From positions 494,394 to 558,393 of the forward strand of contig JAIVFI010000034.1 in assembly GCA_025558095.1 (NCBI GenBank): DNA of 64,000 nucleotides. The letters run 5' to 3'. Below the pieces are notes generated by a model, which saw only the letters and a list, made by a program, of their open reading frames with translations, was not told the origin of the DNA and made no database searches. Source of the DNA: Hyaloraphidium curvatum SAG 235-1 (Eukaryota; Fungi; Monoblepharomycota). Positions 14,762-55,364 of this stretch are shown here, piece after piece. How positions within the stretch are numbered: position 1 is the first letter of the stretch; each line of letters starts with the position of its first letter. The position numbers were made by a program, and so were the translations under genes.

Positions 14762-14858
14762 TTAGCAATTGATCGGCGCCTTGAGTCACCCGGAGTTGGG
14801 AGTTCCGCACGGTCTCCCAGCCTCGCAGACTCCGCCTCCGCCCCCCCTCTCCGGCGCC

Positions 14859-34070: not shown

Positions 34071-35260
34071 TCACGCCGCAAGCGGCCGCAGCTTGACCAT
34101 CACCTTGTTCGGCTTGATCGTGCCGCTGGGAGCGCAGAGGTGAGCACACGATCGTGACCGAATGCCGCAAGGCCCACCTGAAGATCTCCTTGAACTGCCA
34201 GGTGTCCGGGCCCTCGGGCACGGGGAGGATATCGAACTTGCGGAGGATTGAGGCGGTAGCGAGGCGGCCCTCAGCGACTGCGGGCACAGGGGACGGTCAG
34301 GCGGGCACGAGCATCACCAGTAGCCAGAGAAAACGCACGCGCGAGACGTTCGCCGACGCAGCGCCTGGCGCCGTTGCCGAACGGCGCGTTGCTCCACAGG
34401 CCAGCCTTGGATCCGCCGTTGGCGTCCTCATAGTAGCGCTCGGGCGTCCAGATCGAGGGGTCCTTGTCCCAGTACCACGGGGCGTTCTGCATCGCGTGGA
34501 TGCCGACAAAGATCAGGTCGTCCTTCTGGAAGTTGACCTTCTTGGGCTTTCCGAAGGCGTCGGTGTAGTTGCACGTGAAGTCCTCGAACGCCGTGCGGAG
34601 CGCGCCGTACGGGGCCGAGGGGTACTTGCGCAGCGTCTCCTTGATGCACGCGTTCAGGACCTTGCACTTCTCCAGCACCTCGAGGTTGTCGAGATCGCCC
34701 TTGCCGTTGACCTCCTCGACCTCGGCGCGGATGGCGGCCTGGAGGTCGGGGCGCTTGGAGAGCTCGTAGGTCATGAGGGAGAGCAGGGCGGCGGTCGTCT
34801 GGGGAAAGAGGTGTCAGCCGGGTCGCGGCATCCGGGCGGCCGAGGCGACGCACGTCGTGTCCGGCAAAGAGAACGTTCTGTAGAGCAGGTCGTCAGGGCA
34901 GCATGTAAGGCTGCGCCGCAAGTACTCACCATCAGGGCGTTCTGGAGGTGCTCCTCGGTCATCCCCTCCTTGATGCCGGTCTGGTAAGTGTCGTCCATGA
35001 TGCAGTTGACCTGCTCGTTCCTCTTGATCCGCGCCGCGTTCTCGGCCACGAGATCGTACAGCATCTTGTGGCTCCGCTTCTGGTCCGCCACCACCCCCGG
35101 CACCAGCACGAACGCCCACTCGCCGAGCAGCATCCTGACGTTCGCCAGCAGCGCGCCGCACTCGAGCCACCGGTCGAAAGCGTGCGACATCTCGGCGCCT
35201 TTCTCGGTCGACATGGCGCGCACTTCGCTGCCGAAAGTGAGGCGGGTGATAACTGCGCCG
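34071..35260 (-). pseudogene. Cytochrome P450, C-terminal half only; 5' part cut at the island boundary
   Basis: VITRLTFG, FAGHDT/T, KETLR, TPERY, heme motif PFGNGARRCVG. The N-terminal half is not found in the window. Confidence 0.88.
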
Positions 35261-35688
35261 CGCCCTGGCGCTGAAGCAGGCCATCCTCTGCCTCGCCGTC
35301 ATCTCCTCCGACTCGTCCATCCCGCAGGCCCTGGACCGCGTGGGGATGCTGGAGGAGGACGTGCGGATCTTTGACACGCTGGACTCGGGGCTCGGAGGGC
35401 TTCTTCCAGCATCAGGCGCGGGTCAAGGCGCTGCACGAGGCCCCACGGCAGGTGCCCTCGCAGCCCGCCGCCCTCGGCGTCGTGATCCTCGGATCCACGG
35501 AGCGATCGGGGCAGCTCTCGCAGGCGGTGGAGCAGGCCCTGCTCGGGCAGACCTTCCCAACGGGGTCGGCGCCCGAGACGTACAACCTGCTGTGCTCGGT
35601 GCTGGCCGAGGCTGCTGATGGCGATGCGGCGCGGCTGGAGCAGGGTTCCCCAAAACCCCGTGGAATCGAAGCTGGCCAAGGACGATGA
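35259..35688 (+). pseudogene. Start-less C-terminal coding fragment, probably the 3' end of the gene cut at 55364
   Basis: Codon-biased RALALKQAILCLAVISSDSS...EAGQGR* with one extra G near 35394. An in-frame TAA at 35250 lies in P450 sequence. Confidence 0.55.
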
Positions 35689-35856
35689 TCGGGCCGATTG
35701 CGGATGAACGAGATATGTATCTACAGATACAGTGATACAATACAGGATGAAATAGCAGCTCGTGAACGAGTGCCAGGCAGGCGATTGCGAGCCGCATCGT
35801 CGCCTGCTTCAAAAGTCAATACGATCCGAAGAGTGGATCGAGGCGTCGCACCCACA

Positions 35857-36752
35857 TTACATGTTGCCGAACTTCTTGCCCTTTCCAATCTCACCGGTGG
35901 CCCACTGCTCCTTGGTGACCTCGGCGTGGCAGATAGGGTGGAGGATCTCGTATTTGGTGTACTCGATCATGCCCTTGCGGTGCTGGTGCCTGAGGAAGAA
36001 GTCGGCAGCGTGGCCGGCTTTCTTGGAAAGGGAGACCAATCAGTGGCAAAGGCGGGGATCTGGGCGACGGGCGCACCGCTCCCCAGGCGTGATTGCGGTG
36101 GTAAAGGAGGTTCCTGATCTTGCCCTTGCACTTGGTGCACCGGAAGTTCTGTTTCTTGAGCTTCGAAGCACTGCGTGATCAGATGCGAAGCCCCCATCGC
36201 CGACCAAAAGACTCACGATCCAGACATCCAGGTAGTGGATCGCCAGGCGGCCCTCGGTGTCCGTGTTGATGTTGTACGCCTTCTTCATCTCGAGTGGAGT
36301 CAGACCGGCCTCGTTGGTCTGCGAAAGCGGCGATCTGAGCAGCGAGCATGCGTCGATCGAGACTCACGCACGTGCTTGGTCTCCCAGTCGGGATTTTCCT
36401 CCCTCCACTTCTTGGTAATCGCAGCCTTCTTGGCTTTCTGCTCCGCCGTGAGCGCGTCGTTGGTGGACATGTTCTGCGCCGCGAGCGCCTGCCGCTTTGC
36501 CTCGACGACGGCGTTCCTCTTCTCGCGCTTCTTCGCCAGCGCCGCCGCGTGCTTGGCGTCCCTCGGGACGGTGCGGCGGCGTCCACCCTTGCCGGGAGGA
36601 GGTCCCCGCGCCTGTACGCGCCTGGGCTTGGCGGGGGCGGCGGCGGTCGGGGCGGCGTCGGAAGGCTCGGGTTCGTCGTCGCCGAAGGCGTAAGGCACGA
36701 AATAGGGGGCGGGGCGCGGGGGGGAGAGGGAGGGGGCGCGGATCTTGGGCAT
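35857..36752 (-). CDS. HNH-like zinc-binding endonuclease with basic N-terminus, 4 exons
   Basis: Spliced FRCTKCKGKIRNLLYHRNHAWGA/KAGHAADFF...IEYTKYEILHPICHAEVT resembles CxxC...DH...K...ExxKCxxLCxxCHxxxT. One splice phase conflict near 36175-36215. Confidence 0.55.
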
Positions 36753-37020
36753 GGTGCGGCGGAGCGGCGGTCGCGCGCGTGCGGGAAGGTGGAAGGGGGC
36801 GGAAGCGGCGGGCGGGGGTGCGCCGCGACGGAGAGCGTGACCCGTCCGGGGGGAGGGGCAGTTGCGGGGCGGGCATTATATATCGACTCCGGGGTTCTGG
36901 TTCGCGCTATCCGAAGCGCGAACGAATGTGATCTGTGACGGTTTGTCGCGTAAACGGAGCGCGAACCAGCCCAGCGCACCACCCCATCGGACCGATTACT
37001 CATCACCCACTTCATCCACC

Positions 37021-38660
37021 ATGGCGGAGCTGGCGACGATCCGGGCGGTGCTGGTCGACGACTATTGCAAGCTCAATGGTCTTCCTCGCGGCGCCATGCC
37101 CGCGCTGCCCCCGGGCGCCGACCTCGGCCTCGCGCACCTGTTGCGGCCTTCTTGCTCCGCGGGAACCACGACCTCCCCGAAGGCTTCCTTTACGAGTTCT
37201 ACCAGAAGAAGAAGGGACCCGTTATGGCGGACCAGTTGGAGCGCGCGTATCGTCACCACGGCGACGTCGGCATCGGTTGCGTGGTCGCGGCTCGCGGGGA
37301 TCCCTGCGTCTCGCTCCTCGAGCCGGAGATGTGGGAGCACCCGGACCCGCGGGTATCTCTTGAGCTGCACGTCAGGAAGCTCGTCAATAGGACGATCATC
37401 CAGGGAGATCACATGATCGTAGGTGCTTTGCCTGTCGGTGCGTCATAATCCGCTGACCACGCAACTCGAAGCCATCGCTCAAGACCACCGAACCGATCTA
37501 CATCCGGCCTGGGTCCGAGATGAATGCCGCCGCCCAAGCCAGGTACAAGAAGCTGTTCTGGGACGACGAGTCGGCCAACGCGGAGTTCGAAGATATTCAG
37601 TGGATCTGCACCGCAGATCACCAGCTGGAAACTGCGCGGGATATCGGCAAGGACGTTGAACTGGTGCGGGGAGACGCGCTCGTTGCTCTTGCGGACGCTG
37701 CAGAAGAGCTGCCGCGCCACGTCATACTCGAGGTGCGTCATCCTGTTGGCTCGATCCGGCGCACCTGACACCCTTTTCCCAGCACTTCATACCGGAGCTT
37801 TTCGAACAGAGGCCCGATTTGGACCGAGCAAGTCTTCCCCGGATCGCAGAGGGCCCCGTCATCGGCAACATGGTCTTCATGCCGTCGATCGACCCGGGAT
37901 ACCGCAAACGCAAAGGCCTTGGGACCGGACTCGACGTGCCGCGCGTCGTGCCCAAGTTTCCGGACACGCCCGCGGGCAAGGTCGCCGCTGCTTTGGAAGC
38001 GCTGGCGACCGTTCATTGTAGGTTTCTTCCGGCCCTCTTTTTGCGTTGGCTGACGTGATGGGGCTTCCTCGCAGTCGAGACAGGATCCGACGAGTCTGGT
38101 GCGTCTAACTGCGACGATGCTCGAGTTCTCCCTCATGCATTAGTTTTGCAGTGGAGGACACCGCCGCCGAGTACGTCCCGTCGTCCTCGCCCCTCGACAT
38201 CCCGATGCCCGTCGGAGCGTCGTCGACCATGGCGCCTCCGCCGATCCCCCTCTTCTCCGTCAACACCAAGCCAGCCTCGAGCTCCGGCGGGTCTTTCCCC
38301 AAGTTCAGCTTCACGGCCGGGCTTTCCGCGACGCCGTTCCCAGCGTACGGTCAAGCGGCGCAGCAGCCCCTCTCGGCCTTCGGCGCTCCGCCCCCTCGTC
38401 CCCTCTTCGTCTCCAACTCGCCGTCGCTGGGAGGCCCGGCGGACGCCGAAGGTCCCGCTGGATCGCAGGCGCAGCGCCCCTCCGCGGCCGGCTTGCTGGG
38501 CCGGCGCAAGGTCAATTCGTCGCGCGCCGCTGCGACGCGATCGAAGGAGGCTGAGGCGGCGGAGATGGCTGCCATCGCGGCGGCGCCAAACAAGAGCAAG
38601 GAAGAGGAGGAGGAGGAGGAATACAAGAAGGAGCTCATCGACGAGTTCGGCATCTATTAG
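37021..38660 (+). CDS. Hypothetical multi-exon protein; apparent frameshift near 37140
   Basis: Codon-biased exons separated by intron-like segments; no family recognised. Divergent from the HNH gene with TTATATAT at about 36876. Confidence 0.5.
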
Positions 38661-38759
38661 GGTACGTTCTCGGCATGATCATCCACACCACTTGCCGGAT
38701 TTGACTCTACGTACCGCAGTCCAACGCATTTTCCGTTGGGGTTCTGGTTGCTGGTGGTG

Positions 38760-41285
38760 GTCTGACGGAGGGCCGGGGCGGGCACCTGCACGTCACGGGC
38801 GAGCAGACGGCGGCGCTGGCTGGAGGCCGACTGCTGGTCGAAGCAGATGCGGAAGGTGGCGTAGAAGGTGTAGTCCTGATAGGGAGAAGGGGGTCAGCGG
38901 CCGATCCAAAGCAGCCCGTGCATCCGCTACTCACGGTGATCAAGGCAAAGTCGTCGGTGGTCAGGAACGAGTTGTCTTTGAAGTCGACGCCGGCCTGCTT
39001 GGGCAGCATGTTGGGCGCGACCTTCATCTCCACGACGTTGGGGTCCGCGGTCGGGAGGTAGGTGAAGTTGGTGTTGACGGCCAGGGTCGAGAGGGCGCCG
39101 ACGGCCGAGTCGACCATGTGGTGGTGTTGACGTTGCGGGTCACGGTGGTGGCGGCGCCGATGTTGGGCGTGCGCTCGACTTTGTTGCGGCCGAGGATCGT
39201 CTTGGTCAGGCGGGCCTCGAGACGGGCAGGTCGGGCGAAGGTGAAGGTGGCCATGATCCTCGTGAAAATGAGCGGGAACATCCCGCAGACCGTGCAAGAA
39301 GGGCCTCTTCCGGGCCAACGGAGTAGGGCGACCCAGTGTAATCGCCCAAAATGACAGACGCCCTCGAAAAGGGCGCTACCGGCGTGGCTTGCCTGTCCGT
39401 GCTGCGCGTCACCATTCGAGGTCCACTGCCGCGCGCGATTGGCCACGGCCGCACTGCCGCCTCGCAGTTAAAGCGGCTGCGACCGCCCTTCATTGGCATT
39501 GCCCTGGCACCACGCCCCGGTCCCTTGGGCGGCCGAGCGCCGGCGGTCGGGTGCGGCGTCCTAATGTCGGATATGTGATACACCTCCTGGATGAGGCGGG
39601 CGAGTCGCCGGGGCTCCATGACGAACAAAGTGCCCCGAGCGGACGCGCCGCGTCGGCATGGCGCGCGCCGGAGTCCCGGTGACAACAACCAGGGCATTGC
39701 CTAGAGAAAGTTTGCCGATGGGAGCTTGCCGCATCCGGCGTCGGCGCCATTCCATCTCGCGCTTTGGAAAAGTCGGGTGTTTATTGTTGAACTGTTTATC
39801 ACGCGCACCATCATCGCTCGTCCACCGCGCGCATCGGACTAAGAGCAGAAAAGCCAGGATCAGCACCATGCTGCGCGTCAGGGTCCAGATTGACTACCCG
39901 TCCGGTTGGAGCGCCCGCCAAAGGTGTCGGGCCCATCGCAAGCTCACATTTGGCGGGTTCTTTAGTCGACGATGCGTGGAAGTCCAACGTCGGCGGACCG
40001 ACGTCGGTCGAGCTCGACGGCTTCGGCGACCTCATGGTCTCGGGGCAGAAGGGCGGCGACCCCCAGCTGCGGGAGATCGGGGCCATCAGGGACAAGGATG
40101 CCGAGCCACTCGTTCCCCTGGTCAGAAAGGGGCAGATCGAGATCACCGGTATGGCTACGTGGTCGTCACTGGGGACCTACCTAATGTGAAACTTCAGGCG
40201 GGATCGTATCCAAGGTTCTGACGGGAGGGGAGGTTGGGGACAACTACACCGAGGAGTACACGTTTGAGATCCTCTTGGACGTCAGGGTCCAGGAAGGTCA
40301 TTTGGACGCCGTCCGAACGACTTTGGAGGACATGCTGGCCTGACAAAGTGAGTGTCACATCGATTCTAAGGCCGATGCCTAGCTTATCCTCCGTCTTCCA
40401 GACGGCTAGCGCGCAGCTAATGATTCGCAAGAGGGTAGCAACTAGCTTCATTCGCGATTGTACAGCAAGCTCTTCTTCAATGCCAACGGCGAGCGTTATC
40501 GGCGCCAATCCGCCTGCTCCCCGTCGCATGTCCCGCCAGGCAAGGAGGCGTCGGCGGTGCTGCTAAGGCCCCCGCTTAAAGCTCCAGGAGCGCGGCGGCA
40601 ACGTCAGCGAGCCTTAAGCCAGGGGGAGCGACGTGCTCCACCACATGCAAGAGCGTCACGCTGGTGACCGACGCCACGTTGCAGAGGTCGAGCTCGAGGG
40701 CACCCGAGGCGTTGGGCGTGCCGATGAGGGCGTTGGCCGTGAGGACCTTGCCCGTGCAGGTGTTGGTGTTGGCGGCGCCGAGAAGCAGTTGGTGTCGAAG
40801 TTGAAGGCGTAGGTGCCGACGACGTTGCAGACGTCGCCGATGGCAATCTTCAGCTGGCCGTTCTGGTACGACGAGCCGTCGGTCTTAACACAGGTGGGCA
40901 GGGTATACGAGACGGCCTCGACCGAGCCGGCGTAGCCGGGCAGGCTGATGTAGCCCGAGTCGGCATCAAGGGTGAGGTTGTTGGGCCACCTGGAGGGAGG
41001 GGGGATCCGGTCGGTTCAGGAACCCGCCGCCCGCATAGCCCACCTCGACAACATGGTAAAGTCGACAATCAGGAAGCGCTGCCCGTCGGTGATGTCGTAC
41101 GACAGCCCCGTCAGGTTGGAGTTCTTGATGTCCGCCTTGATGTCGGTCTCCACGTTCACGGTGGTGGACAGGGCGATCGACACCGGGTAGGCGTAGCGCG
41201 AGGCCCGGCGGTTGCCGCCGGGGAACACGTCCTGCCACTCGAAGTAGACCGTGTTGTTGCGGACCTCGTAGCCGGTGCGGCTCAT
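38760..41285 (-). pseudogene. Fragmented gene for a secreted Cys/Thr/Asn-rich beta protein, interrupted by about 39350-40625
   Basis: Codon-biased pieces VYFEWQD..., WPNNLTLD...DVCNVVGTYAFNFDTNC and DYTFYATFRICFD...RRRLLARD. Frameshifts near 40779 and 39118; no start or signal peptide seen. Confidence 0.5.
39960..40189 (+). pseudogene. Possible HIRAN-domain fragment
   Basis: EIGAIRDKDAEPLVPLVRKGQIEITG resembles the HIRAN C-terminal IGxIPxxxAxxLxPLxxxG; stops follow. Confidence 0.3.
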
Positions 41286-41786
41286 GGCGGCCGGGTTGAC
41301 GGCCTGCGGAACCCGGCGAGCTCACGCCGCAGAGCGCGACGGTTCAGACGCGCGGCAGCAGCCGACTGCGCCAACCACGCTCGCCGTGTCGCGCCAAGTT
41401 CGGACCCCCGCGACAGAAGACGGGCGGCGAGCCGACCGCGCGGCGTACGTGGCACGCGGACCGTCGGGCTTCTCGCGGAGGAGGAGGAGGGCGCAGGGGA
41501 TGGGGGCTCGGTATCGGGCGGCGCTCCGGGCCACCGCAGGGCAAGCGGCGTGGCCTGAAGCGCCCGCCATGGCTCCGCCGCGCGCCGCGGCCGACCCATG
41601 CAGCCGAGACAAAGAAAAGGGCGGGCACCCCTGGGCGCTTCGACGTGTGAGATGGCACCGGCAGCCGCGATCTTTTGCAAGCTCTCAGGCCCTTCAATGT
41701 TAAGTCGGGATAAGTCGGGATATCGAATATCGCGGGCCGAACTTCGTCGTCTGCCGTGGGGGCAAGGTGTGCCCGAGGACCAGGAA

Positions 41787-42210
41787 CGGGGGCTGGCCGG
41801 GCCCCGGTGGGAGGCGGCTGCGGGCCCATCGAGTGGCCCTGCGAGTTGGATAGCGACCGGTGTTCCGGGATATTGAACAGGGAGCAGGGATACTCGGTGT
41901 GGACGGGGCCGTGCGATGGGCAAGCGTGATACTGGGCCGGGGCGGCCGGCGGAGAGCGACGCGCACGCGGTGGCGCACCGGACCTCCCGCAGCAACTCAC
42001 GGCATGAGGCCGGGATATGGGCAATCCACGATGACGCGCTATTGTGACGCGGGATATCGGGCGGAAGGCGGTGGTGGGTGCAGCTGGCCCCGGCGAACAA
42101 ACCCCTCGGGACCAAACGCGCGCGGAGATCTTGCCGGCTATCAGGTCACTCGATGGAAGGCCCGGATATTGAGTATCGGCAGCGGAGACTCGCCGGCCGC
42201 CGTGATATGA
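41787..42210 (+). repeat. Diverged long direct repeat, copy A, rich in CGGGATAT motifs (partner about 50651-51090)
   Basis: Collinear shared blocks GGGCCCCGGT, GCTGCGGGCC, CTGCGAG.TGGA, CGGGATATT and GTGGA.GGGGCCGTGCGA. Confidence 0.75.
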
Positions 42211-42262
42211 GGTCCCACCGGCGGCTGTTGGGGGGCGTGATATGGATCTGTTTACTAGACCA

Positions 42263-42330
42263 AAACCCTTCAACCCGGTTCAACCCTCCTTCAACCCTCT
42301 TCAACCCTCTTTCAACCCTCCCCAACCCTC
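42263..42330 (+). repeat. Tandem array of about 10 bp TTCAACCCT-like units
   Basis: Six CAACCC cores between 42271 and 42328. Confidence 0.85.
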
Positions 42331-42645
42331 CCCCACCGGGCAAAACCCCCTGAGAGGCCACCTGCGCGCCGGTCCCGTCCCAGACACGCGTCGGCGTAGC
42401 CTTCTCTGCCCTCGAATCAACGCTACCGTCGCGAGGAGCCTCGCCTTCCCGCGTGTCGCGACGGTTTATAGCTTCCTGTCCCCGGGAGGAGACGAGGCCT
42501 CTGTTGAAGAACCCCTGGGGACATTCTGCACGAGAATGACTCCAAGCAGGGCAGTCTGAGCTCTAGGAAGGACTGTGGCGCCGAGGACGAGGCCAACTGA
42601 TCCGAACCGTCGCGTCTCGACGCGACTTCTCGGGCCAGCGGAGGC

Positions 42646-45600
42646 ATGGGTCGGAACCGGAACACGGGCGGCGCGAAGAAGGTCTCTGGCGGCGTGAAGA
42701 AGGCTAAGGTCCCCGCGACGAAGGCTTCGGACGCACCAAAGCAGACGAAGAAGCGCGGGCGCCCGCCAAAGACCGCAGCGCCGCCGGCCGGGCAGCCGGA
42801 AAGCGGAGGGGAGCCCGCCGGACAGCAGCCACAAGCTTCGGCGGGTGAGGCACCTGCAGAAGGCCGTCCTCAGCACGGAACGGTCTTCCAGCTCGAGTTC
42901 TCGGCCGCCCAAAAGAGGAGGTTGCCGGGGAAGAAGGTTACCCCGTTCACCCATGGTCTCCAGCCTTTTCCCTTCGACCTACGACGTCATCCGGAGCGCT
43001 TCGTCCTCCGGGATGGAGGGGATCCGATTTTCAAGGTCCTCAACGGGCCGGGAACCCCGGAAATGGATTCTCTCGTGACGCTTCGGCCGACCTTCATCCT
43101 TTCCCCCTGGGAGGGCTACCCGGACTTGGCGCGGCTCATTTGTCCGACGTGCGGCTTGAAGCTGAAGCCCAGTGCTTGGGTTCAAGATCTCTTCCTCATG
43201 CGTGGGCCCCATGGAGAGTTGGAACTTCTTTGCCCCCGGCGATACGTTTGCGAGAACTTTGGGGAAGCCAAGGCGGGGAAGTGCACCTTCCAAATTGGTG
43301 CCCACAACCTGCTCGATAAAATTTCCGCGGACCTGCGCTACGTCGGTAGGAACCGCTCCCCGATCGATCTTGTCGACCTCGCTCATCATTCGTCGGCAGT
43401 GTTCCCTTACGAACGGGTCGGCCACTCGTACGTGCACATGTCGTTCCTCTCGAAGGTCTATAACCTGGTGAACGAGTGCGGGGCGGGCATGACGGCTAAG
43501 ATCCTGAACGGTACGGCTCTTTCTGAACTGGTTCTTGCCCTTTCGTGACATGTCGGTTCCAGCCGACCTGGAAGCCGAACATCACGTCGTTGCGCTGCAC
43601 CTTCAACACCACGGGATGCCGGGCCCCATGCCGGATGCGGAGACGACCAGCGCATTCTTCTCTTCAGGTAACCTTTTGTGTGGCATCGTGAGGACACGCT
43701 GTGACTCCGTTCCCATAGACTCTTCGGGATCCAAGCAAACGAGCATAGATTCCTTTGTCGTGAGATCAGACTCGGCTGAAAACGACTCGGCACCTTCTCA
43801 GGCGGGGCCCTCCGACGGCACGACCGTACCGACGTTCGCCGGCCTCTTCCGGCAGAGCAGGAAGAAGCCGCAGTCGATCCAGGAGTCAATGGAGGACGAA
43901 TTCTCGTGAGTTGGGCCGCGATTCGGGCTGAGCCTTCGCCTGTGTGTTGACTTGGCGTCAGAATGGCCGGGGATGTGATCGACGCTGCTTTTGTGACTCG
44001 TCTACACGACGCAGTTTGGAACCGATACGGCGACCATCTTTTCCACTCATATCAGTACCAGGCTGACTGTGGGTTCTGGCGGAACGGATTTGGTTTCGCT
44101 AATTGGCTCATCTCCGCCGCGCAGGCCGGAACATTGCGCAGGACGGACTGGAAAAGACCGCACTGCACCAAGCTTACGTGCACGACGAGGAGAATGGGGG
44201 CCACAAGGCCCTCAACTCCAGCAAGCATGCTGACGGCGGTGCTGCCGCGGATGCCGAGAAGGATGCGGCTGCAAAGGTGAACGGCGGCCGCGTGGCGGCC
44301 GAGTCCATGAGCAGCAAACCTCAGCTGATCAAGTACATCACCGTGACTGGTACTCCTCTTGGCGCGGTGAGCCGCTCCGCGCTGCCCATGCAGCGGAGCT
44401 TCTGACGACGTTCGCAGTACATGGCCCGGAACAAGGGTGACGACGCAGCCAAGCACGGCCTAGAGGTTCTTCGTAACTCTTTGCGGGCTCAGAAAGCTGC
44501 GGGCCGTGGAATCGACGGAAAGAAGCTTGATTCGGGGAAATCTGTCGGCGCCTTTGAGGAGCCGGGGACTCCGGTCATCGTGCTCCAAGTGGACCGGTGC
44601 TGTGGCTCGCCGGGCTCTTTAGCCCCACTCGTGAAGGCTGTGTTTGGCGATCTCGAGGTCGTACGTCTCGACCATTTCCACTGGGTGCAACGGATTTGCG
44701 AGGACGTCGGGGTCACGGATTTTGTCAAGGACAAGATCATCGGCATCGTTTGGAGTTCCATTCAGTTCCCGGGAGTTGAGCTCCCCAGCGGGGAGAAGAC
44801 GCCGCAGCCGATGCTGCCACGCGAGGAAGCCATCAAGGCCTTCGACGCCGCTAAGAACGAAGCTCTTCGGTACCACGGCGGTCTTCCTCCAAAGAAGGTC
44901 GAGGTGTTTGAGAAGAACTGGGCAAACGCTCGAGTGCACCTGGAAAAGGGGTGTTTGGACGATCCAGAGATTTTGTTCTACATCGCGGCAGACGGCTCAG
45001 TGATGGTTGCTAGGGGAAGCAATCGTCTCGAGGGCTATTTTCGGCTTCTGCAGGACTGGCTCGGCCGCCACGCGAAACTCGAGGACACCATCCTGCAGGA
45101 GATTGACCATTTCGATCTCGATTACATGCTGACCGTGTTGCGCATCAAATTCGGCGACTTTTGCGCCCAGCAGTTGGGCAGGAATCCGGCTCTTTGCCAG
45201 GTGCTGGAAGCTCGGAACCGCTTGGCTCGCCAGAATGGTCACCCTGCACAATGCAACCCGCTTCTGGAGGATCACGAGTGTTTTGAGATTCGTGCCGTCA
45301 CCTCGGCGGAAGCACGGCAAGCCGGGAAGGCGATCCGGGACCAGCAGGCCCACGTCGCCGAAAGGGAAAAGGATCCGGCTGTCCCGAAGGCGCGGCCCGC
45401 CTCGCCTCGCGGATTCACTCCGAAAAGTCGTCCTTCGCACAAGCCGTCGCCGTCTCCGAAAGCTCGTGGTAGAGCCGCGCCGAACTACGGCATCAAGGCC
45501 GAGTTTCAGCGCACTGTGGCCCAGGTAAATGATTGCGATGGAGTGGATTCATGGTCTACTCAACATGTCTGCGTTCATTAGCTCGGGTCCGCCGTTGTAG

Positions 45601-46662
45601 CCACCTCAGGCTTGTTCTCGCCGGTCATTTCGTCTCCAACCGGGCCTTCGAGCCAAATGTCGCCGAAGGCTGCCTCTACTGCCGCTGCAAGCCAGCCTCT
45701 TTCGTTTCCTATGGAGGAAGACACGCTGGAGGTTCCCGTCGTTCCTTCTCTCTCTTCCGCGCCCGTGCAGGCTCTAAACCGGCCTGTGGAGCCTGTATTG
45801 GAGTGGGTGGACGCCATTTTCGGATCTCGGCTTCTGGGCTCATCCCTCGTCTTTTGCAGGACGCCGGCGCCCTTGCCCGTCGCCTTTCAGCCGTCAAGCG
45901 GTGCAATGGCCTTGAGCGGCAAGCGGAAACGTGAGGATTCGGTTCAGGGACGGGCAGATTCGCCGGCGGCACCGCGGCCGGCCTCGACGTCGGTTCCGGC
46001 GGCTAAGAAGCGGGCCATGCCGCCGGCGCCTGGGACAACATCGTCTCTGGCTCTACCCGATGCTTCCACATTGGCAGCTGGGCCCGCTTTGCTCGAGCAC
46101 GTGCCGAGGCCCCTGCACTTGCCGCCCGAGATCTCGAAAGAGGCTTGGGCCGAGGCCCTCCTCGCTGCCTTCGCTCATGTGGCCCAGAAGCTCGTCCAAG
46201 GTGCTTCGACTGTGTCGGTGAGCGGCATACCGGCTTCTCTCTGCCGTCGCGCTGGTGGTTTAACGTCAGTTGGACCGACAGGTCGCTCCTTCGTTGACCC
46301 TGCCGGAAGTTGCTGTTTCGGCCATGGAACCCGCGAAGCCCAAGGTGCGAGGGCATGCCCCAAAGGATGAAGCTCAGCTATGTCGGCGCTGCGGGCAGCT
46401 CAAGGAGGAGACATCCCGGGCTGCTCATGTCCATCGGCTGGGCCTTTGCGATGATGGATTTCGCCGTAGCGACGACACGCAGCGCAAGATTACCATCCCC
46501 GCTTACGGCACGCGCCGCGCGGAAGATGGAGGTCCCGACTGGGCCTACCTGGAGGGAGAGTTTCTCGACCTCCTTGATGCCAAGGATGCCACGCTGCGTG
46601 GCCCCCGTCTGACGGCCTACGAGGCGTTGAAGGTGGTTCTTGTGACGGAATTCCCGAAGTAG
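42646..46662 (+). CDS. DDE transposase, DUF6729-containing Mutator/ISL3-like type, multi-exon
   Basis: AT-hook KRGRPPK; Cys domain CPTCG...RRYVC...LLDKISADLR/VFP. Catalytic candidates NIAQDG, LQVDRCC, RLDHFH, GCLDDP and RGSNRLEGYF; C-terminal CRRCG...H...C knuckle. Confidence 0.75.
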
Positions 46663-47880
46663 TAGATCGGTTTCATGTATATCATTGTGGAATTCAAGCA
46701 GGGCAACTCATCTGAAGTCCCCATTGACCGTCCTGGTGAACACGGACCCGGAAGGCGATCGTATGTGCTCGGATGCGGCCATAGAAGTGATTGAATCGGC
46801 TCCAGCGGCCATGGTAGAGGTAATGCGATGCACAGAAAGGCATGTGCTTGATGACAGGATTGAGGAGCTCGACACACCGGCGCAAAGTGGCACTACATCG
46901 GGGGAGGGCGTCGGACCTGCTAGTCTTGACCTGCTGGACCACCTACACCAAGCGAAAATCGATGGCCGGTAGCCGTTCTAGCTTCTGCGCACTTATTTAC
47001 ATCGAGTCAGCGTATTGCGCGGAGCAGACCGGGTTTGGTGCGTGGTTGCGCGCCATCGGCGTCAATTTCCACTGACGAGGGGGGGGGTCTGGGTCCCCGA
47101 GGTGCTGCGGACCTAAATTGAGATGCAGGCCGAATTCGACGCTTTCATACTACTACTTGAGGAATCGGCACGCCTCGCAGTGCTGCATTGCGTTTTGTGA
47201 GCGGGATGGCTCCGGAACGGCTCAAAATCGGCCAAAATGGGTCCGCGCCGACCGCCCGCGTTCACGCACAGGCGATTCAATCGACGCGGCTTTTCGACAA
47301 ATCGCGTATTTATATGCATTTCTAACGCCTCATAGCTGTGGACAACTTCACGTCCTCATGCGGGGGCTCCGCGAGGTCCCAAACTTGAGCATGCCGTGCA
47401 TGGAGCTCTGGGAGCGCTCGCTGACCAGTAGAGGATGGAAGAAAGCCATCATCCATCGGAATGACTTTATTGAACCATGTATGGTACATTAGAACGCTCG
47501 AGCATCTTGCTGCTCGGCATTGACGAGATGCCGGACGTCCATTCAAGTGTGCAGCTGTCAAGCCCGGCCCAGAGTGAATAAGACCTGCGGAGCTCTTCTT
47601 GCGCTCCCAAACCACGCATGTAAATGTGATTAGCTCTTGTCGGGATTTAGGCGTTTCCTCCATATCGTCCCTTCCCCACCAGGCTCGACGGGACGTGAAT
47701 TCGGGACGCTCGCTCACATTCGGCGGTCCTGCGACCTGAATAGCAAATGACTGGCCTTGAGTTCCCCAGGGAGGGAAGTACAACATCTCTTCTATCCTAG
47801 TTGGTCTCGGGGAGGAGAACCGAGCACTAGCATAGCGTGTAGTGAAGTTCCAAGATCGCGGTTCGGCGGCGGGTCTCAGA

Positions 47881-47912
47881 GAGTCTATCCAAGGGAGCCC
47901 TTGGATAGACTC
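47881..47912. repeat. Perfect palindrome: 15 bp arms with 2 bp spacer AG
   Basis: GAGTCTATCCAAGGG-AG-CCCTTGGATAGACTC. Confidence 0.95.
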
Positions 47913-48480
47913 CCCCGAACTCCGCTCGGTTTCCGATAGCGATGGCTGGAGACCCGACCGGTGCCACGAGAGAGCACCAAGCCGGACGTCCAGCGGCCTT
48001 GTCGTCTGCTTCCTACTGCCTCTGGACGGCGGCGCATCGGAACATTCCTTCCCCCTCGGTTCGTGCTCCGCCGTTTCGTGGCACGAATCCTGACCAACGG
48101 CCGTGTTCTCCCCCATTCTCGCTCCTATCTGGACCGGAAAAAGATCCTCGGTGCCTCCGTTGGGGCAGCCAACGGCTGTACAGTGCTTGGGGGCCTCGCG
48201 ATGTAGGTGCCGCGAAGCTCCTTTTCGACACCCTTGTCTGACGTCTTTGAACCCCTTCCTCCTCACTTTCCGGCCCGTCTATGGTCGCTCGCGCTCATGT
48301 TCAAGCCGGTTGCGGGCTCAGTTCGTGTGTGTGACGCTCTGGTACCCCTGTCTCTCGGCGGAACGTCTGTCGCGCTTCAGGGACCGAAACCGACCCGCCA
48401 CCGCCTCCTCATCCCGATCGAGCTTGCATTTGGCCCTCTCCTGCTTCATTGCGGGCCGCTGATTGTCCTTCTGGGCGGAG

Positions 48481-49534
48481 ATGGAGCCCCAGCATGCTTC
48501 CAGCGCGCTGGACGTGTCCCACCTCGTTTCGCTCGTTGGAAAGTTCGGAACCTATGCCTCGGCGGCCCAGCTCGGATCTGGGCGAGGCCTGCGCTGGATT
48601 GCCTACGTCAGAAAGTCGCTGGACGACGGGAGCGACAATCTGTCGCTCGTGGATCAGATCGGGATCATCCGGGACTGGGCAACCGCGCGCGGGGACATTG
48701 TCGTCGCGGTGCACGAAGAACTGGCCAGCGGGGCACTGCCCAAGGGGCCTGGGGCGTTCGAACGGAAGGAATTGCATGCTGCATTCGTCTCCTTGCTCGC
48801 CTCGAACGACTACGCCGGCCTGGTCGTCGTCCGGCTGGACCGGTTGTCTCGCGACATGGTTGCGACCCACAGCTACATTCAGGAGCTCACCCAGGCCCGA
48901 AAATCCTTCGTTTGCGTCAACCAGCCCGAGCTGACCTTCTTCTGGAGCGGCTCGGCGCCGTCGGCTACTTCGTGGCTGTCACTCGCAATGAACTCGCTCA
49001 TGGCACAGTTTGAGCGCGAACAGGCGAGCTTTCCCCGTCTTTTGAAGGCGTAGCACCTCTAATCATTGTTCATTTTAGGTTCGCGAACGGACCAAGACAT
49101 CCGTTGCTCAGCGAGTGCGCCGCGGCATCGGTGTCTCGCTCCACTCCCCGTTCGGGACGCAGTTCGAGGCGACCATGCCTGACGGCACGCGACGCCTTTC
49201 GTTCAGCTCCAGTGACCTCGTCGGACGCGCCCGTTCGAACGGGAAAGCTTCACCGTTGAATATCGTGGACCATCCGGCTGAGAGAGAGCAGTTCCTCTTG
49301 CTTGCCGCCTTCCACCTGTCAGCTCTTCGGAAAGGCCAGAAACGGGAGCCGCGGGAGTACGCGGATCTGCTTTCCAAGCACTCCGTGAACGTCAATCATC
49401 GGAACCCAGGAAAGCTGAGAACCAACGGGAACTTGGTCAAGGCGACGATCAAGTCGATCAAGTTCTTCTCCTCCAGGGACGGCGGTAGCTTCGAAGCGGC
49501 GGTTGCGGAGCAAATGGCAAGACTGGAAACGTGA
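48481..49534 (+). CDS. Serine recombinase (resolvase catalytic domain plus recombinase-like C-terminus), 332 aa, one GC-AG intron 49024-49078
   Basis: YVRKS nucleophile motif, SLVDQ, EELASG, ERKEL, VVRLDRLSRD. Splicing restores helix E AQFEREQ/VRERTK...RRG...SPFG; branch point CTAAT and acceptor TTTTAG. Confidence 0.88.
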
Positions 49535-49989
49535 ACGGGGCGTTCACGATCTGTGCCAGGGGTGGGGAGGCGCGGAGGACGGGGCAGATGCCAAGATAGA
49601 CCATATCCTCTTGTAATCCTTTCCTCGACATTACTGCATCCTTATCTGTGTTTCAAGCAGTCATTTCCATTCATTTGATTCCGTCTTTGATGCCAAGCCC
49701 GCGAAATCTAGATGGTCTTGCCGGAAACGTACACGAGGAGGCAGACAGGTCACCATCGGCCACGGAGCTGCTCGTCGACATGGCATCGGCAATCCTGCAT
49801 GTTGTGTTCTCCATCTTCGGCAACCAGCCGCTTCTCGGGAGGGGTTCTGAAGTGTGGGCGAAAAGTTGGCCACATCTGAGGTGACCAGGGGACCAAGCGT
49901 CCCTCGCGTGAAGCCCCAAACAAGAGCAATCAAAAACGACATTTGCTCTCTTCACCAAAGAACCCGTTGCGCTTGATTCCAACAGGTAG

Positions 49990-50370
49990 ATCGCGCCAAC
50001 GGCGCGCAGCGCGTCTCGAGCGTCGACAGTCCGTGAGCAGCGAGCCCGCCATAAGATCCACGTGACACGCTGAAAGAGCTCCCTCCAACGAACATCCGAC
50101 GGAGCGAAGAGCCAAGAAATGAGCACATTCGAAGGGCGAGCGCGACAAACTTCGAGCCGGCCAAATCCTGCAGCACACGAGCGACGCGGCCCATTCCGCC
50201 CGTGCCTGAGGTTTCTAAAGGTTCCCAAAAGTGCTCTCGGCGCGCGGTGCTCGAAGGCACCCGCGTCGCGTCACAGCGAGGAGATGTGCATGGTTTTCCG
50301 TGCCCCAAGAGTCCGGAAACGCGTTGCTTCAGGTTCCACTGGCCAACTGCTCCATAGAAAAGATAAAATC
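49990..50370 (-). pseudogene. Possible decayed C-terminus of an L1/Tx1-like non-LTR retroelement ORF2
   Basis: PCTSPRC...EHFW followed, in another frame, by WRELFQRVTWILWRARC. Confidence 0.3.
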
Positions 50371-50650
50371 ATCGGATAACCGTGTTTCCAGGAGGACTGC
50401 AGCCCGCGAGGCGACTCCGCGCAAGGTCCGGGAAGAGCACCATGTCCTGGACCCCGGCGCCGCAGAACTCCACATCGAGCACCAGGGAGGCAATCGGGAG
50501 GTCTCGAGACGCGCCAGGAGAGCCGGGAATGGGCCAGAATCGCGCAAAATGGCGTGGAAACGGGCTCCGGATTCGGGTCAGTAAACATTATTTTCCTTAA
50601 TAGATTTTTCAATCTCCAGGTAATCAAAAACAAAAATCGCCGCTCCGGGG

Positions 50651-51090
50651 CGGGGTTGGTGGGGCCCCGGTAAGAGGCCGCTGCGGGCCAACCGCGTGCT
50701 CTGCGAGCTGGACGGTGGTGGATCTTCGGGATATTAAGCCGGGAGCTCGGGTGCGTGGCGTGGATGGGGCCGTGCGACGTGCCGCGACATGCTGAGTCGC
50801 GGGGGCCCAAACCGCCCAGAAAAGCACCGTATGTAGCGGCCCATCGGACCCGTCCTAGTAATTCGGACACGAAGCGGCGTCGGGATATTGGATATGAACG
50901 CGGATGCGCTGCTGCGAGCTGTGATTTGGGCCGCGAGGGGGGTGACCTCGGAGATCACCACGGTCGGCTCGGGCGCGGAACGCTGCGGTGGCCCGAGACT
51001 GCACCCGGCCGGGGCGGCGGCCCTCAGGCAGAAACCTGCATCGGGATACGGGCCGCCGCCAGGATCTGCGGCTCTGCGGCGTGGTATGTG
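50651..51090 (+). repeat. Diverged long direct repeat, copy B
   Basis: Aligns by eye to 41787-42210 at an offset of about 8865 bp. Confidence 0.75.
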
Positions 51091-51244
51091 AGACAGCGCG
51101 CGGGACGCCGAGCGCCCGGCGGTAGATAGGCGGAATGGGTCGGGAAGCGGTAGACTGCAAAACCATGGTGGCAGCACGGCGAGCATGGTCCCCGATCGAG
51201 CGCCGGACAGTGGGTTGAGAGGTGGAGGTTGTGGTGGCGAAAAG

Positions 51245-51292
51245 GTGGACGGCTCAAAAGGACCGACCCCCGTGGACGGCTCAAAAGGACCG
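51245..51292 (+). repeat. Two exact 21 bp direct repeats, period 27
   Basis: GTGGACGGCTCAAAAGGACCG at 51245 and 51272. Confidence 0.9.
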
Positions 51293-51362
51293 CGCCCCCG
51301 GGGGCCCCACCTCTAGACCCTGATCTTCAGGCACCACCAACCACCGCCCCAACCGAACCGCC

Positions 51363-54300
51363 ATGGGCTCGGCGACCCCTGGAGATCGTCGGCGATTGGC
51401 CCGCCTCTTCGTCGCGGCCGTCTCGCCGTTCTTCGTCCTCCTCGTGGCCGTAGTCTTCGACCATCGGCTGATCCAGGCAATCCAACCATGGCAGACCGCC
51501 CGGGCGCGGCCTGGTATCGCGCATCCCGACTGCGCCGGTTACGGTGCTTCCGTCGCGCTGGCGTGCTTCGAAGCGACCGGGATTGGCATCGCGCGGGTCC
51601 CGGACCCGTGTTTCTCCGCGACCCCGTTCGTTACCTCCGCAGACACTTCGCCTCTTTTCCGGCCGACGGACACCACCCTCCTCGGCGCACATATCGACAT
51701 ACTCTTCTTTTGGCCCCGTACGGTCGCGGCGCTCGCCTTCATCGCCGCCCTGCGAGTTGTGATCCCCCTCGCCGCCGCCGCGCTTTTCCCCACGATCGTC
51801 TGCACCCCGTTGCTCGCCTCCGCGGCGCTTGCATTCCTTGCAGTCTCATGTATCCTGTCACCTCTGTCTGCCGCCGGGCTCGTCCGCCTCGCGCGGCGCC
51901 GTGCCAGTGGACCGTTGCTGGGCCGCCGCCGCCGCTCGCCTCGTCGGCGCATGACCCCCCGCCCGCGCTGCCGTCCGCGTTGCAGCCCGTTGACGCCGAC
52001 GGTACGGGTGAAAGCCGGCGGAGCGCCGCGTCTCGCGACAACCAAGATCCGGGCGCCCGTGCTGTGGCGTATTGCCGCGGCTGTGGTGGAATGGCTGTCG
52101 CGGGCTCGGGCATCAGCGGCCCAAAGGTTGCGCCTGTGCGTCGTGAAAGCCCTGGCTCACACGCCGCCCGTGGACCGGCCTCGGGGGCCGACGCCACGAC
52201 TCCCCCGCCGCAGCGCCGTAGCCCCCATGCCTCTCCTCGCAATGTTGCTGGCTCTCCTCGCCCTCTTCCCCCTGCCCACGGCCGCCACGGACTCGCAGCA
52301 GGCTACTGCGGGTGTCGGCTGGATGCATGGTGCAGCGTTGGCGGCGCTGTTGGCGGCGGCATCCGCCCAGTTTGGTGCGAGTTCAGATGGCCCGAGCAAC
52401 CCCCCGGTGAGTTCTCGCTCGCTCGGAAGAAGGGTCAATCGTATGACCGACGGATGCATCCCCAAGCTGCTTTGGACGCTCGCCAAGATGGGCAAGCTCA
52501 TGCCCTGGGACCAGCCCATCCCTGCGAACCCCCCGCTTACCGAGGACCCGGAAGACCCCGAGGACATCGATCCGGCTGCGGAGGACGATGCCGGTTCCGC
52601 CGCCGGGGCCGGGATCCCGGCAACGCACGCGACGGCGACGACCGGCGAGACCCCGCTGCCTCTGCCCTCACCCGATCCCACGCCCACTCCCGCCGAGGAG
52701 CAGGACGCCGCCTCAGCCCTCGGACCCGCGCCCGGGCATGCAGTTGAGCACGCGGAGACGCCCGATCCTGCTCTGGCATCTGCAGCCCCCGACAGCCTGG
52801 CGGCGGCGCAGCCCACCCTCCCCGCGCTCCGGCCAGACATCCCCCTCATCAGGCAGCCGCCAGAGGTGGTCTACGCGACGGGCAGCGTACGCCGACCCAA
52901 GGACGCCTTCGTGCGCGTGCATCGCGTGACGTACGCGAACGTTGATCGGGTGACAACTGTGGAGGTGGCCGAGAAGGCCAAGAAGAAGCACGAGGCGGCG
53001 TTCAAGAACGGTGAGCTATCCCGCGAAATCGTCGTCCTCCGCGCGCTGACGTCGACCTGGCAGCCGGCCGCGACGAGTACGAGGCCGCGTCCACCGAGGC
53101 GGTCGAGGCCGAGGGCATCGGCCAGCCCCCGCCCAAGACCACGTCCGACACGGGGATGGTCTACACGGAGAACGGCGAGATCAAGGTCGAGCGCGCCGAC
53201 AGGCGGCTCCAGCGGCTGCTCGACCTGTTCCGCGTGACTTTCACGGGGACGCAGGCGCTGAAGCGTTTCGAGCTCAAGAAGGTCGGCGACGCCGACATCG
53301 TCAAGTTCGCCCTCCTGCACAACGCGGACTTCGTCTCCGAGTCGGACGCCTCCATCCACTCTCTTACAGCCGCCGTCAGGGCCGCGGAGAAGGCGTTCGA
53401 GGACGAGGTGGAGGCCCGCCGCGCAGAGCAGGACGCCGCTCGCCGTGCCGCTTCCGGGCCGGCCGCGGACGGCGCGGAGGGCGAGGACGCCGGCGGGGAG
53501 GGTGGCGAGGGAGCCAACGGCGAGGGGGATGGTGGCGGTGGCGGCGGCACGGTGCCGACCAAGCGGAAGCTGCAGGTGGGCTTGAGTCGTTTTGAGGGTC
53601 GGGTTGGGGACTCACCGTCAGCCAGACCGCAGCCGACAAGCTCCCCCACCCCTCCCCCGCCGACCACCCTCACCGAAAGTCCGAAAGGGCGAAGAAGCAG
53701 CGCAAGGCGGCACAGAGCGACGGCACCAACCCCGCTCCGCCGAAACCCAGCCACGGCAGGCCCCGGCGGCCCAAGGCTCCCGGCCCCGCCGCCACGCGCG
53801 TCCCTCCCCCGACGGATGCGCTGCTCCGCGACCCCGCCTGGGCCGCAGCCGGGCGCGCGTTCCTTTCGGCTCTTTTAAATGCCGTGGAGAGCCGCCTGAA
53901 GGATGAATGGGCGGCAGCTTGGTCGCTCCGCAGCACGGAGACGGACGTCTTCGACGCGGTGGAGCTGCGGATCAAGGCGTGGCCTGGCGCCCCCGACGCG
54001 CCCCTGATCCCCGCTGCCGAGCTGGAGGGGAGCCGCGCGCGCCCCGCGGACGAGGACGACGGCGAGTACGAGGAGGACATCGAGTGGCCGCCGGGCTTGG
54101 GCCCTGAAAGCAACGCCGCCGACCGCGCGGACTCGGAGAGCGAACGCAGCGACGAGGAGTGCGAGTTCGACCCCATGGATGTCGACGAGGACGCCATGGA
54201 TTTGGACGACGATGCCTCCTCGGAAGGCTCCGCGCCCGGCGGCCCGACCTTGCGGTCCTCCGGCTCCCCGCTTTTCAAGATGGCCAAGGGGGAGGCCGAG

Positions 54301-55364
54301 GCGCTGCTCGCTGCGGTTCGCGCCGAGAGCATTGCGGCGCGGAACCATCTACTCGCGCTAATCCCGCGCCTGGTCGTGGCGTCGGGATTGACGGGCATGA
54401 TCGAGAGCGACATCTTCCTCGGATTCACGCGGGGCTTCCACACCTGGGAGCAGGCCTACCAGGCCAAACAAGACGGGGCCCTCACCCGCAAGGGGATGGC
54501 AGAGCTGCAGAATGCCCTCAAGGGCAAGGAGAAGATCACGAACCGCATGGGGGTGGCGGACGTCATCTACCGCTACCTGAAGGCGGTGGGGCTGTGGAGT
54601 CCGGAGATGAATGCCTGTGGGAGACTGACAACGCCGTGGTCGCGGTTCCGGTCGAGCTGATGGCGCCACCCTATTGCAGGCACGGGCACCTTTGCTGACG
54701 GTGCAAGCGCCGGGCGGAAAAGGGCGTGCGACGAGAAGGAGCGCTTCGCGACCGCGTTCGGGCGCTCGAGGCGGATCGGGCGCTTCTGCGAGGATAAGGG
54801 ATCCGTGTTCCACCTCGCGTTCGCCGCTCTGGTCGCCCGCGATGGTGCCGACAAGCTCGACGACCCCGACATGTGGAAGGGCCTCTGGGCCCACGCAGCA
54901 TTGGAGCCGCAGCTCGTCGAGGCAGCCCGGCTCCGGCTTGCCGACCTCGTGCGTCTCTACCTGGACGAGTCGGCCATCCGTCAGCGCTTGCTGGAACCTC
55001 CCAGGCCCAAGCCGCGTGACCCTATAGCGGGGCCCACTGCTACACCCGCTGCTGGCCCCGCCCTTGCGCATGCCCCCGCTGCACCTGCACCTGCCTCCGC
55101 GGCCACGATCCCGTCGACGGCGTCGCCCTCCCCGTCGCTGCCGGCACCCGTGCCACCTCCCGCTGGCGCGCCCACGCCCGCCCCCGCATCCGCATTGACT
55201 TGGCGCGCGACTATCGACAACGCGATCGCGCGCCTGCGCGGCGTCTACCCCCTCCCCGCGATGCAGGACGCCGCCTTGAGGGAGCGTAGCTGGGTGTCGG
55301 CCGCGGCCGGCACCCTCGCCCACTTCCGCGGGCAGGACGACCACCTTCCCCTCCTCATTAACCG
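51363..55364 (+). CDS. Large hypothetical multi-exon protein, 3'-truncated at the island boundary
   Basis: Codon-biased exons (about 52450-53010, 53065-53576, 53880-54616, 54680-55364) with acidic and Pro-rich linkers. Runs without a stop into the antisense of the next gene; start uncertain. Confidence 0.55.

Follow-up and report, generated by a model that had tools for sequence, protein, structure and literature searches.

The question raised by the end of one Hyaloraphidium curvatum contig is what part of it is mobile. The stretch of DNA analyzed here (the window) is the final 64 kb (64,000 nucleotides) of contig JAIVFI010000034.1 (contig 34) in assembly GCA_025558095.1 of this zoosporic, chytrid-grade fungus. 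Positions 35258-55364 of the window form a 20-kb block that contains a serine recombinase gene and a large transposase-like gene. The initial annotation took the whole block to be a giant element carrying cargo. There is indeed a mobile element with a recombinase and a transposase-like gene in this block, but its size, ends and content differ from what had been proposed. The 20-kb "island" is an 8.4-kb transposon (positions 42229-50641) together with ordinary host DNA on either side, and the breakpoints that bound the island are not the ends of the element.

Comparison with other copies defines the ends of the element. The initial annotation had suggested that other copies be sought and their ends mapped, and three further copies (at loci L001, L002 and L004) were found via the fetched loci of the recombinase protein. 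The sequence that they all have in common with the window is 42229-50641 only, and homology ends at the same bases in every copy. L001 (3748-12161) is 97.5% identical to the window unit over 8416 bp, L002 (4001-12168) is 99.96% and 98.9% identical, with one 278-bp deletion, and L004 (from 3749) is 99.7% identical, so that the copies overall are 97.5-100% identical. The flanks of L001 and L002 are unrelated and belong to different gene neighborhoods. In L001 the unit has CGTGGGC on either side, and in L002 it has GGTCCGG on either side. These are perfect 7-bp duplications that differ from site to site, and the chance of each is ~1e-4 at the local GC content. A 20-kb mobile unit does not fit these observations, since the other copies match 42229-50641 only and two of them have 7-bp duplications at exactly those ends.

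The element is a compact two-gene transposon that has recently inserted at several sites with 7-bp duplications. It carries two genes only, both in the same orientation, and their GC content at third codon positions (GC3) is below that of host genes. On balance, we favor the view that H. curvatum has a recently active DNA transposon of 8.4 kb and that 42229-50641 is an intact copy of it. Near its left end there is an array of TTCAACCCT repeats, which could be a binding array for the transposase.

The variation of the 7-bp duplications from site to site points to a transposase that makes staggered cuts, rather than to site-specific exchange by the serine recombinase. The putative transposase is the product of the large gene. 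The window gene (42646-46662) is as intact as that of L002, because a single substitution (at 44656) separates them. A block of motifs is common to the large proteins of four species: hydrophobic-D-x-CC, VFG, LD-x-[FW]-H, F.K.W..H.E.GC, [ST]N..E, and a C-terminal CxxC..H..CxDG[FV]. The last of these is at the C-terminus of, or adjoins, the partner genes at loci L008, L011 and L012. The H. curvatum exon and the Amoeboaphelidium exon match each other in a targeted pairwise BLASTP comparison with an expect value (E) of 2e-6 over 134 residues, and the Chytridium and Amoeboaphelidium large proteins do so with E 0.007. Two sub-threshold matches to curated models were found in two species, both on the region homologous to 44421-45581: the Chytridium exon matches Pfam DDE_Tnp_ISL3 (E 3.6e-4, 20.8 bits, gathering score 23), and the Amoeboaphelidium exon matches an IS256 model (E 0.047).

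In the DDE transposases of the IS256, ISL3 and Mutator families, an aspartate is followed after ~25 residues by a [C/D]xxH motif and, after ~120 more, by [S/T]NxxE. Because the large protein has the motif order of this type, and because the element makes 7-bp duplications, it is likely that the ~1172-residue protein is a divergent member of the IS256/ISL3/Mutator type of DDE transposases that makes 7-bp staggered cuts and performs integration. The initial annotation had also listed an HNH-like gene. None was found by Pfam in any open reading frame (ORF) tested, and the zinc-finger-like motif in the last exon of the large gene may be what was meant. We also considered and rejected a Fanzor or TnpB identity for the large gene; no such domain (OrfB/TnpB) was found by Pfam in any of its exons.

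The serine recombinase reported in the initial annotation is real. ORF 48463-49053 matches Pfam Resolvase (PF00239) with E 2.9e-13 (50.6 bits, cut-off 23.3), and a 99% identical H. curvatum protein was found with the recombinase ORF among 1.84 billion representative proteins. The recombinase has 332 amino acids (aa), and its gene contains a 55-nucleotide (nt) spliceosomal intron (49024-49078) whose annotated boundary is GC-AG and not GT-AG. The catalytic domain comes first (from residue ~38) and is followed by a C-terminal domain of ~150 aa. Nine residues (Y42, R44, S46, Q59, R95, D120, R121, R124 and E178) are invariant across 13 aligned family members, and the alignment shows that the recombinase retains all catalytic residues. 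A profile of the family matches solved serine recombinases (3guv, Gin, TP901-1 and gamma-delta resolvase) with E 3e-25 to 1e-15. No relatives of the recombinase were detected when viral and metagenome contigs were scanned.

A divergent pair of resolvase-family genes, encoding 294 and 239 aa, lies head to head at locus L007 (8565-11079, on H. curvatum contig 9) with no large partner nearby. Thus, the recombinase family also exists outside the two-gene unit.

The location of a perfect palindrome between the two genes suggests a site for the recombinase. The initial annotation had described this palindrome correctly: it is perfect (15+2+15), and its distances to both genes are as given there. The palindrome (47881-47912) occurs once in the window, 1.2 kb downstream of the large gene and upstream of the recombinase gene (Table 1). 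In Chytridium lagenaria, a 36-bp palindrome (L009:9876-9911) is located 90 bp upstream of the resolvase gene and has the same CAAGGG..CCCTTG core, which supports, without proving, the view that the palindrome is the recombinase's site. In L002 (9260-9420, compared with window 47491-47912), the 278 bp upstream of the palindrome are deleted and the right arm is tandemly tripled, indicating that the region of the site is structurally unstable.

The palindrome is internal and collinear in every copy. We therefore rejected it as a terminus of the element, and the proposal that the island is properly linearized at 47896/47897 does not hold.

We postulate that the two proteins would act at different steps. 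The large protein would integrate the element by means of 7-bp staggered cuts, and the serine recombinase, working at the palindrome in the way that TnpR works at res in the Tn3 family, would resolve two-copy products of transposition, whether cointegrate-type or not. By analogy, we suggest tentatively that the recombinase might act at the internal palindrome as a resolvase that undoes two-copy products.

Several observations weigh against this picture. The resolvase role and the palindrome as site are drawn solely from position and analogy. The ends of the H. curvatum element share only GGCG in inverted orientation (4 bp), which is unusual for a transposase of the IS256/ISL3/Mutator type. No curated family reaches threshold for the large protein in any of the species, and the exons of the H. 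curvatum large gene have no Pfam or NCBIfam match. The 386-aa exon and the four-species profile have no match among 5.8 billion proteins, in a search limited to proteins of 0.55-1.75 times the query length, which puts proteins of 1100-1200 aa out of reach. For the Obelidium large protein, the alignment to the profile is in the correct register but reaches E 0.062 only. AlphaFold models were unusable, with a predicted local distance difference test (pLDDT) of 38.7 for the exon alone and 44.6 for four sequences. Lastly, the first catalytic aspartate is a candidate assignment and is not securely identified.

The way in which the large-protein homology was found belongs with these points. The searches with the large gene used single exons as queries, and the homology emerged only through motifs and the one targeted pairwise comparison. 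When the ORFs of the element were compared with the loci of other species by tblastn and BLASTP, the recombinase alone matched, and comparison of the transposase exon and profile with solved structures gave nothing meaningful.

Relatives of the recombinase are present in six or more other zoosporic fungi, including Phlyctochytrium bullatum, Amoeboaphelidium occidentale, Obelidium mucronatum, Chytridium lagenaria and Quaeritorhiza haematococci, as well as on several metagenome contigs and in a second, divergent H. curvatum set. In three of these species a large gene with no Pfam match adjoins the recombinase gene. In Obelidium it encodes 1121 aa and is on the same strand as the recombinase gene; in Chytridium and Amoeboaphelidium (830 aa in the latter) it is convergent to it. 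The Obelidium genes are part of a repeated unit of 6.8 kb. L008:4693-11452 and L013:4722-11453 are 79-93% identical over a stretch that covers the large gene and the recombinase gene, their flanks are different, and imperfect inverted repeats of ~36 bp are found at the ends of the L008 copy. The annotated introns, and the relatives in Monoblepharidomycetes, Chytridiomycetes and aphelids, are signs of a family long resident in eukaryotes. The family is also recently active, with near-identical copies that have target duplications.

One arrangement in C. lagenaria is different. At L012:10001-12230, a 539-aa "resolvase" model includes the CxxC..H..CxDG motif typical of the C-terminus of the large partner, and the motif is present again at ~18976, 8.5 kb downstream; a fusion or rearrangement of an element copy is one possible explanation.

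The 7-mers on the two sides of the window copy match at only 4 of 7 positions. This mismatch indicates that a flank was exchanged between the window copy and another copy, and that this happened either in the cell or in the assembly. In the latter case, the joins of flank, element and flank in contig 34, and in contig JAIVFI010000046.1 (contig 46), would be mis-joins across an 8.4-kb repeat with nearly identical copies. Contig 34 terminates with the window, 13 kb past the element, and contig 46 repeats that stretch. L004, on contig 46, consists of the left flank of L001 (contig 9) and the right flank of the window copy. Its left flank has zero substitutions in 3.7 kb relative to L001, its right part differs from the window by one indel in 8.9 kb, and there is one clean switch inside the element, at window 43621-43735, along with many scattered 1-nt indels. 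The window and L002 copies are nearly identical as well, separated by few substitutions, the 278-bp deletion and one 29-bp insertion. All of this could result from mis-assembly, and L004 is either an assembly chimera or the product of a very recent exchange between copies. However, mis-assembly covers only the unmatched 7-mers and L004. It does not account for the breakpoints at 35258 and ~55364, which are in unique sequence, and the intact insertions in L001 and L002 are internally consistent. We take mis-joins seriously as an explanation of the contig structure, although we consider them less likely than not. The idea that a resolvase made the L004 mosaic was rejected; the switch is at 43.6 kb and not at the palindrome.

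The edges of the 20-kb block have to be explained separately from the transposon. The left junction, at ~35258-35261, is a sharp discontinuity and a real rearrangement breakpoint. In the minus-strand cytochrome P450 (P450) frame, third-position GC is 0.73-1.0 as far as 35259 and then drops to 0.40; in the plus frame it is at most 0.6 and then 1.0 from 35262. The P450 exon 34271-34813 covers positions 276-418 only of the Pfam p450 profile, and no p450 signal was found in the tested ORFs to the right of 55364, where the N-terminal part was looked for. A TAA at 35250-35252 directly precedes the start-less plus-strand frame that opens at 35262, and this fragment (35262-35688) has no Pfam match.

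The right edge, at ~55364, is a probable breakpoint. The plus-strand frame there reads ...DDHLPLLIN and ends at 55362, but the break cannot be placed by composition, because the plus-strand gene and the minus-strand Ser/Thr-rich repeat gene overlap in this region and their third positions coincide. The description of host genes as truncated on both sides stands at the left, where the P450 gene is cut at a sharp breakpoint, whereas the right junction cannot be placed independently. Positions 51363-55364, treated in the initial annotation as a single gene, span at least three reading frames with stops, and a host-like coding signal is present only at ~53015-55364. The sole homologue found of this right-hand piece is the locus's own annotated protein, P0059, in a search that was blind above ~1118 aa.

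The P0059 model (54175-56113) contains a C-terminal part that is the antisense reading of minus-strand, Ser/Thr-rich 30-nt repeats (55705-55881), and this part of the public gene model is probably wrong. The Ser/Thr-rich region itself is probably the stalk of an upstream Reeler-domain gene that is called in L004.

The bases at both junctions read as the initial annotation quoted them. CCG is present at 35258-35260 and at 55362-55364, and the frames are as described. However, six in-frame 3-nt microhomology pairs are available within ~35 nt at the right break, as expected by chance, so that little can be concluded from the shared CCG and codon phase. The two outer segments of the block (35258-42228 and 50642-55364) have host-like GC and, where coding, host-like GC3, and they are not repeated with the element; what had been called decayed cargo is this host-like DNA. 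Comparison of the two segments with each other and with the rest of the window by tblastx gave low-complexity noise only. The joined junction sequence had no match among metagenome contigs and fetched loci, collections that do not contain the H. curvatum genome.

A modified form of the circle model could accommodate these breakpoints. Two direct copies of the 8.4-kb element would have flanked a host segment (50642-55364 followed by 35262-42228), and recombination between them, resolvase-mediated or homologous, would have freed a 20.1-kb circle with a hybrid element. The circle, broken inside a host gene, would then have been re-inserted by end joining between the P450 gene and the Ser/Thr-rich gene, with loss of target DNA. 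This model predicts one element with unmatched left and right 7-mers, a block bounded by truncated genes, and gene pieces in permuted order and compatible phase. Deletion between direct sites, moreover, is the standard reaction of the Tn3 and gamma-delta resolvases. On the other side, neither an intact host gene nor a reciprocal locus was found, in searches that could hardly have shown them. The unmatched 7-mers fit any ectopic exchange or assembly mis-join equally well, the match in phase and CCG is not significant, and the right breakpoint is not independently located. We regard the modified circle as improbable.

A broader version would make zoosporic fungi the hosts of a eukaryotic counterpart of Tn3. 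A DDE transposase would move the element via cointegrate-like intermediates, an intron-bearing resolvase would act at the internal palindrome, and the 20.1-kb block would be a by-product circle, re-inserted with 11.7 kb of host genes. By our estimate, there is a small probability that this combination of events is correct as a whole.

It is quite improbable, in our view, that integration or transposition of the element is the work of the serine recombinase, in the style of IS607 or of large serine recombinases, and that the large protein has an accessory role or interacts with the host. In favor of this reading, the recombinase is intact and is conserved together with the unit, no family could be assigned to the large protein, and the best, though weak, NCBIfam matches of the recombinase (XisF, IS607 and CcrA; those to XisF and CcrA cover the catalytic domain) are to enzymes of excision and integration. 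The IS607 model score falls far short of its cut-off (E 0.004, 16.6 bits, cut-off 110). Large serine recombinases have ~450-700 aa, with a recombinase domain (PF07508) and a zinc-ribbon domain behind the catalytic domain. These features were not found either: the protein has 332 aa, and neither the whole product nor exon 2 has a Pfam match beyond Resolvase. When a serine recombinase exchanges strands, it does so at a 2-bp overlap, and no target duplication results. In contrast, the 7-mers that flank the element are duplicated and site-variable, and the large protein has the D..D(2)H..N..E motifs typical of DDE transposases.

The model of the initial annotation, in which 35258-55364 is a giant cargo element with the arms of the palindrome as termini, inserted as a circle reopened in its own gene at CCG, is hardly credible. 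In its favor, it has the junction sequences and frames right, there is a sharp breakpoint at the left, and the palindrome resembles two abutted inverted ends, but the other copies share 42229-50641 only and are collinear across the palindrome, two of them have target duplications at the 8.4-kb ends, the outer 11.7 kb are host-like and not repeated with the element, the coincidence of CCG and phase is expected by chance, and the supposed single gene lies in several frames.

The two-gene transposon can be compared with several known systems. Transposons of the Tn3 family have a DDE transposase (TnpA), a serine resolvase (TnpR), a res site, 38-bp terminal inverted repeats and a 5-bp target duplication. 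The H. curvatum element is similar to members of this family (Tn3, gamma-delta) in combining a gene for a large transposase (~1000-1200 aa) with one for a serine recombinase, in having a short inverted-repeat site between the two, just upstream of the recombinase gene, in making short target duplications, and in lacking cargo. It differs in its eukaryotic host, in the annotated resolvase intron, and in having gene spans that exceed the coding lengths for both genes. The large protein has no match to the Tn3 transposase (PF01526) by Pfam, the duplication is 7 bp rather than 5 bp, and there are no 38-bp terminal repeats. The recombinase, at 332 aa, has a different C-terminal domain, and a three-subsite res is not evident. 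The likeness to Tn3 covers organization; the H. curvatum element may also transpose replicatively, which for this element is only a proposal by analogy.

Eukaryotic elements of the IS607 type with Fanzor2/TnpB also encode a serine recombinase (Bao and Jurka 2013, PMC3627910). In the eukaryotic literature that we searched, a serine recombinase in mobile elements was found only in the IS607/Fanzor type. The element described here is different. Its recombinase has the catalytic domain first, whereas in IS607 TnpA a MerR-type DNA-binding domain is at the N-terminus and the catalytic domain at the C-terminus. Its partner gene is not TnpB or Fanzor, and it has 7-bp duplications, whereas IS607 makes none.

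The large protein resembles the IS256, ISL3 and Mutator transposases in motif order and in the weak model matches on homologous exons. The 7-bp duplication is near their 8-9 bp, and inverted terminal repeats are present in Obelidium (L008). In contrast to these transposases, the protein is 2-3 times longer, with extra zinc-finger-like regions at the N- and C-termini. The model matches are sub-threshold, and a terminal inverted repeat was not seen in H. curvatum. To our knowledge, no IS256, ISL3 or Mutator element in eukaryotes carries a serine recombinase.

Starships, like the element described here, are mobile elements of fungi. They use a tyrosine recombinase (DUF3435, the "Captain"), carry cargo, and are tens to hundreds of kb long. 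In contrast, the H. curvatum element is 8.4 kb long and has a serine recombinase and a transposase-like gene and no cargo. Among the ORFs scanned across 35258-55364, there is no DUF3435 family member, and Resolvase is the only Pfam match.

The pairing of a transposase-like gene with a serine recombinase gene is typical of bacterial Tn3, and we have not found it described for eukaryotes. A search of the literature on chytrid serine recombinases and resolvases and on H. curvatum transposable elements found nothing relevant. We infer that the novelty lies in a DDE transposon with a resolvase, in eukaryotes, with divergent enzymes. The element offers a test of whether replicative, cointegrate-forming transposition occurs in eukaryotic nuclei. 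It also provides genome engineering with a serine recombinase that occurs naturally in a eukaryote and has a candidate cognate site, and it probably drives rearrangements, or gives rise to assembly errors, in chytrid genomes.

Table 1. Positions of the element, its parts and the features at the edges of the 20-kb block (window coordinates).
Feature	Position	Strand	Basis or remarks
Cytochrome P450 gene without N-terminal part, cut at left breakpoint	34271..35259	-	Pfam p450, E 7e-28
Start-less coding fragment, frame ALALKQAILCLAV...	35262..35688	+	Frameshift near 35390; stop at 35686-35688; AT-rich DNA after it
Left flanking 7-mer GTTGGGG	42222..42228		Differs from right 7-mer
Repeated mobile unit "E", 8.4 kb	42229..50641	+	Transposase-like gene, palindromic site and serine recombinase gene; comparison of copies
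Left subterminal array, ~six TTCAACCCT(C) repeats	42267..42331	+	Tandem Repeats Finder and pattern search; kept in all copies
Multi-exon gene, large transposase-like protein	42646..46662	+	Annotated as 1171-1172 aa in L001 and L002; here only the first, 282-aa exon is annotated
Largest exon ORF, 386 aa, putative catalytic core	44421..45581	+	Motifs VLQVD-R-CC, VFG, LDHFH (D58, D84, H87), F.K.W..H.E.GC, GSNRLEG
Last exon of large gene	46270..46662	+	CxxC...H...CxDGF zinc-finger-like motif; no Pfam match
Extra half-site-like motif TCTATCCTAGT	47791..47801	+	90 bp upstream of palindrome; one mismatch to arm core; alone not above chance
Perfect palindrome GAGTCTATCCAAGGG-AG-CCCTTGGATAGACTC	47881..47912		15+2+15; candidate recombinase site; 569 bp upstream of recombinase ATG
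Serine recombinase exon 1, catalytic domain	48481..49023	+	Pfam Resolvase; identical to annotated P0055
Serine recombinase exon 2, C-terminal ~150 aa, SPFGT motif	49079..49534	+	P0055 exon mapping; conserved in relatives
Right flanking 7-mer GCTCCGG	50642..50648		Same right flank in L004
Host-like gene, frame open to 56721	53015..55364	+	GC3 0.82-0.86; partly annotated as P0059
Ser/Thr-rich repeat coding region	55365..56526	-	30-nt repeats; ORF translations; runs into right junction

GC across the window is 58-73%, and the gene content includes an ankyrin protein, a P450, a ferric reductase, a 3-beta-HSD, a questin oxidase-like protein and a SUEL lectin, with genes split into exons, as well as an intron-bearing tRNA gene. 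Locus L003, on the same contig, is identical (100%) to window 38481-59534. For a neighboring ORF of 785 aa, an exact look-up gave no entry.

Several repeats were found outside the element. A 159-bp direct repeat with 73% identity has one copy at 41789-41947 (plus strand), which stops 281 bp before the left end of the element, and a second at 50652-50807, which begins 11 bp past the right end. None of the other element copies has this repeat in its flanks. An inverted duplication of 1336 bp (99.25% identity) has arms at 6894-8223 and 13452-14787 with ~5.2 kb between them, where a MYND-finger gene (8396-9502, minus strand) and the intron-containing tRNA gene (12961-13075, minus strand) are located. 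Smaller repeats related to this duplication are present at 13326-13428, 13488-13592 and 8083-8187. Lastly, positions 21892-22211 contain a tandem duplication of ~140-185 bp with 80% identity.

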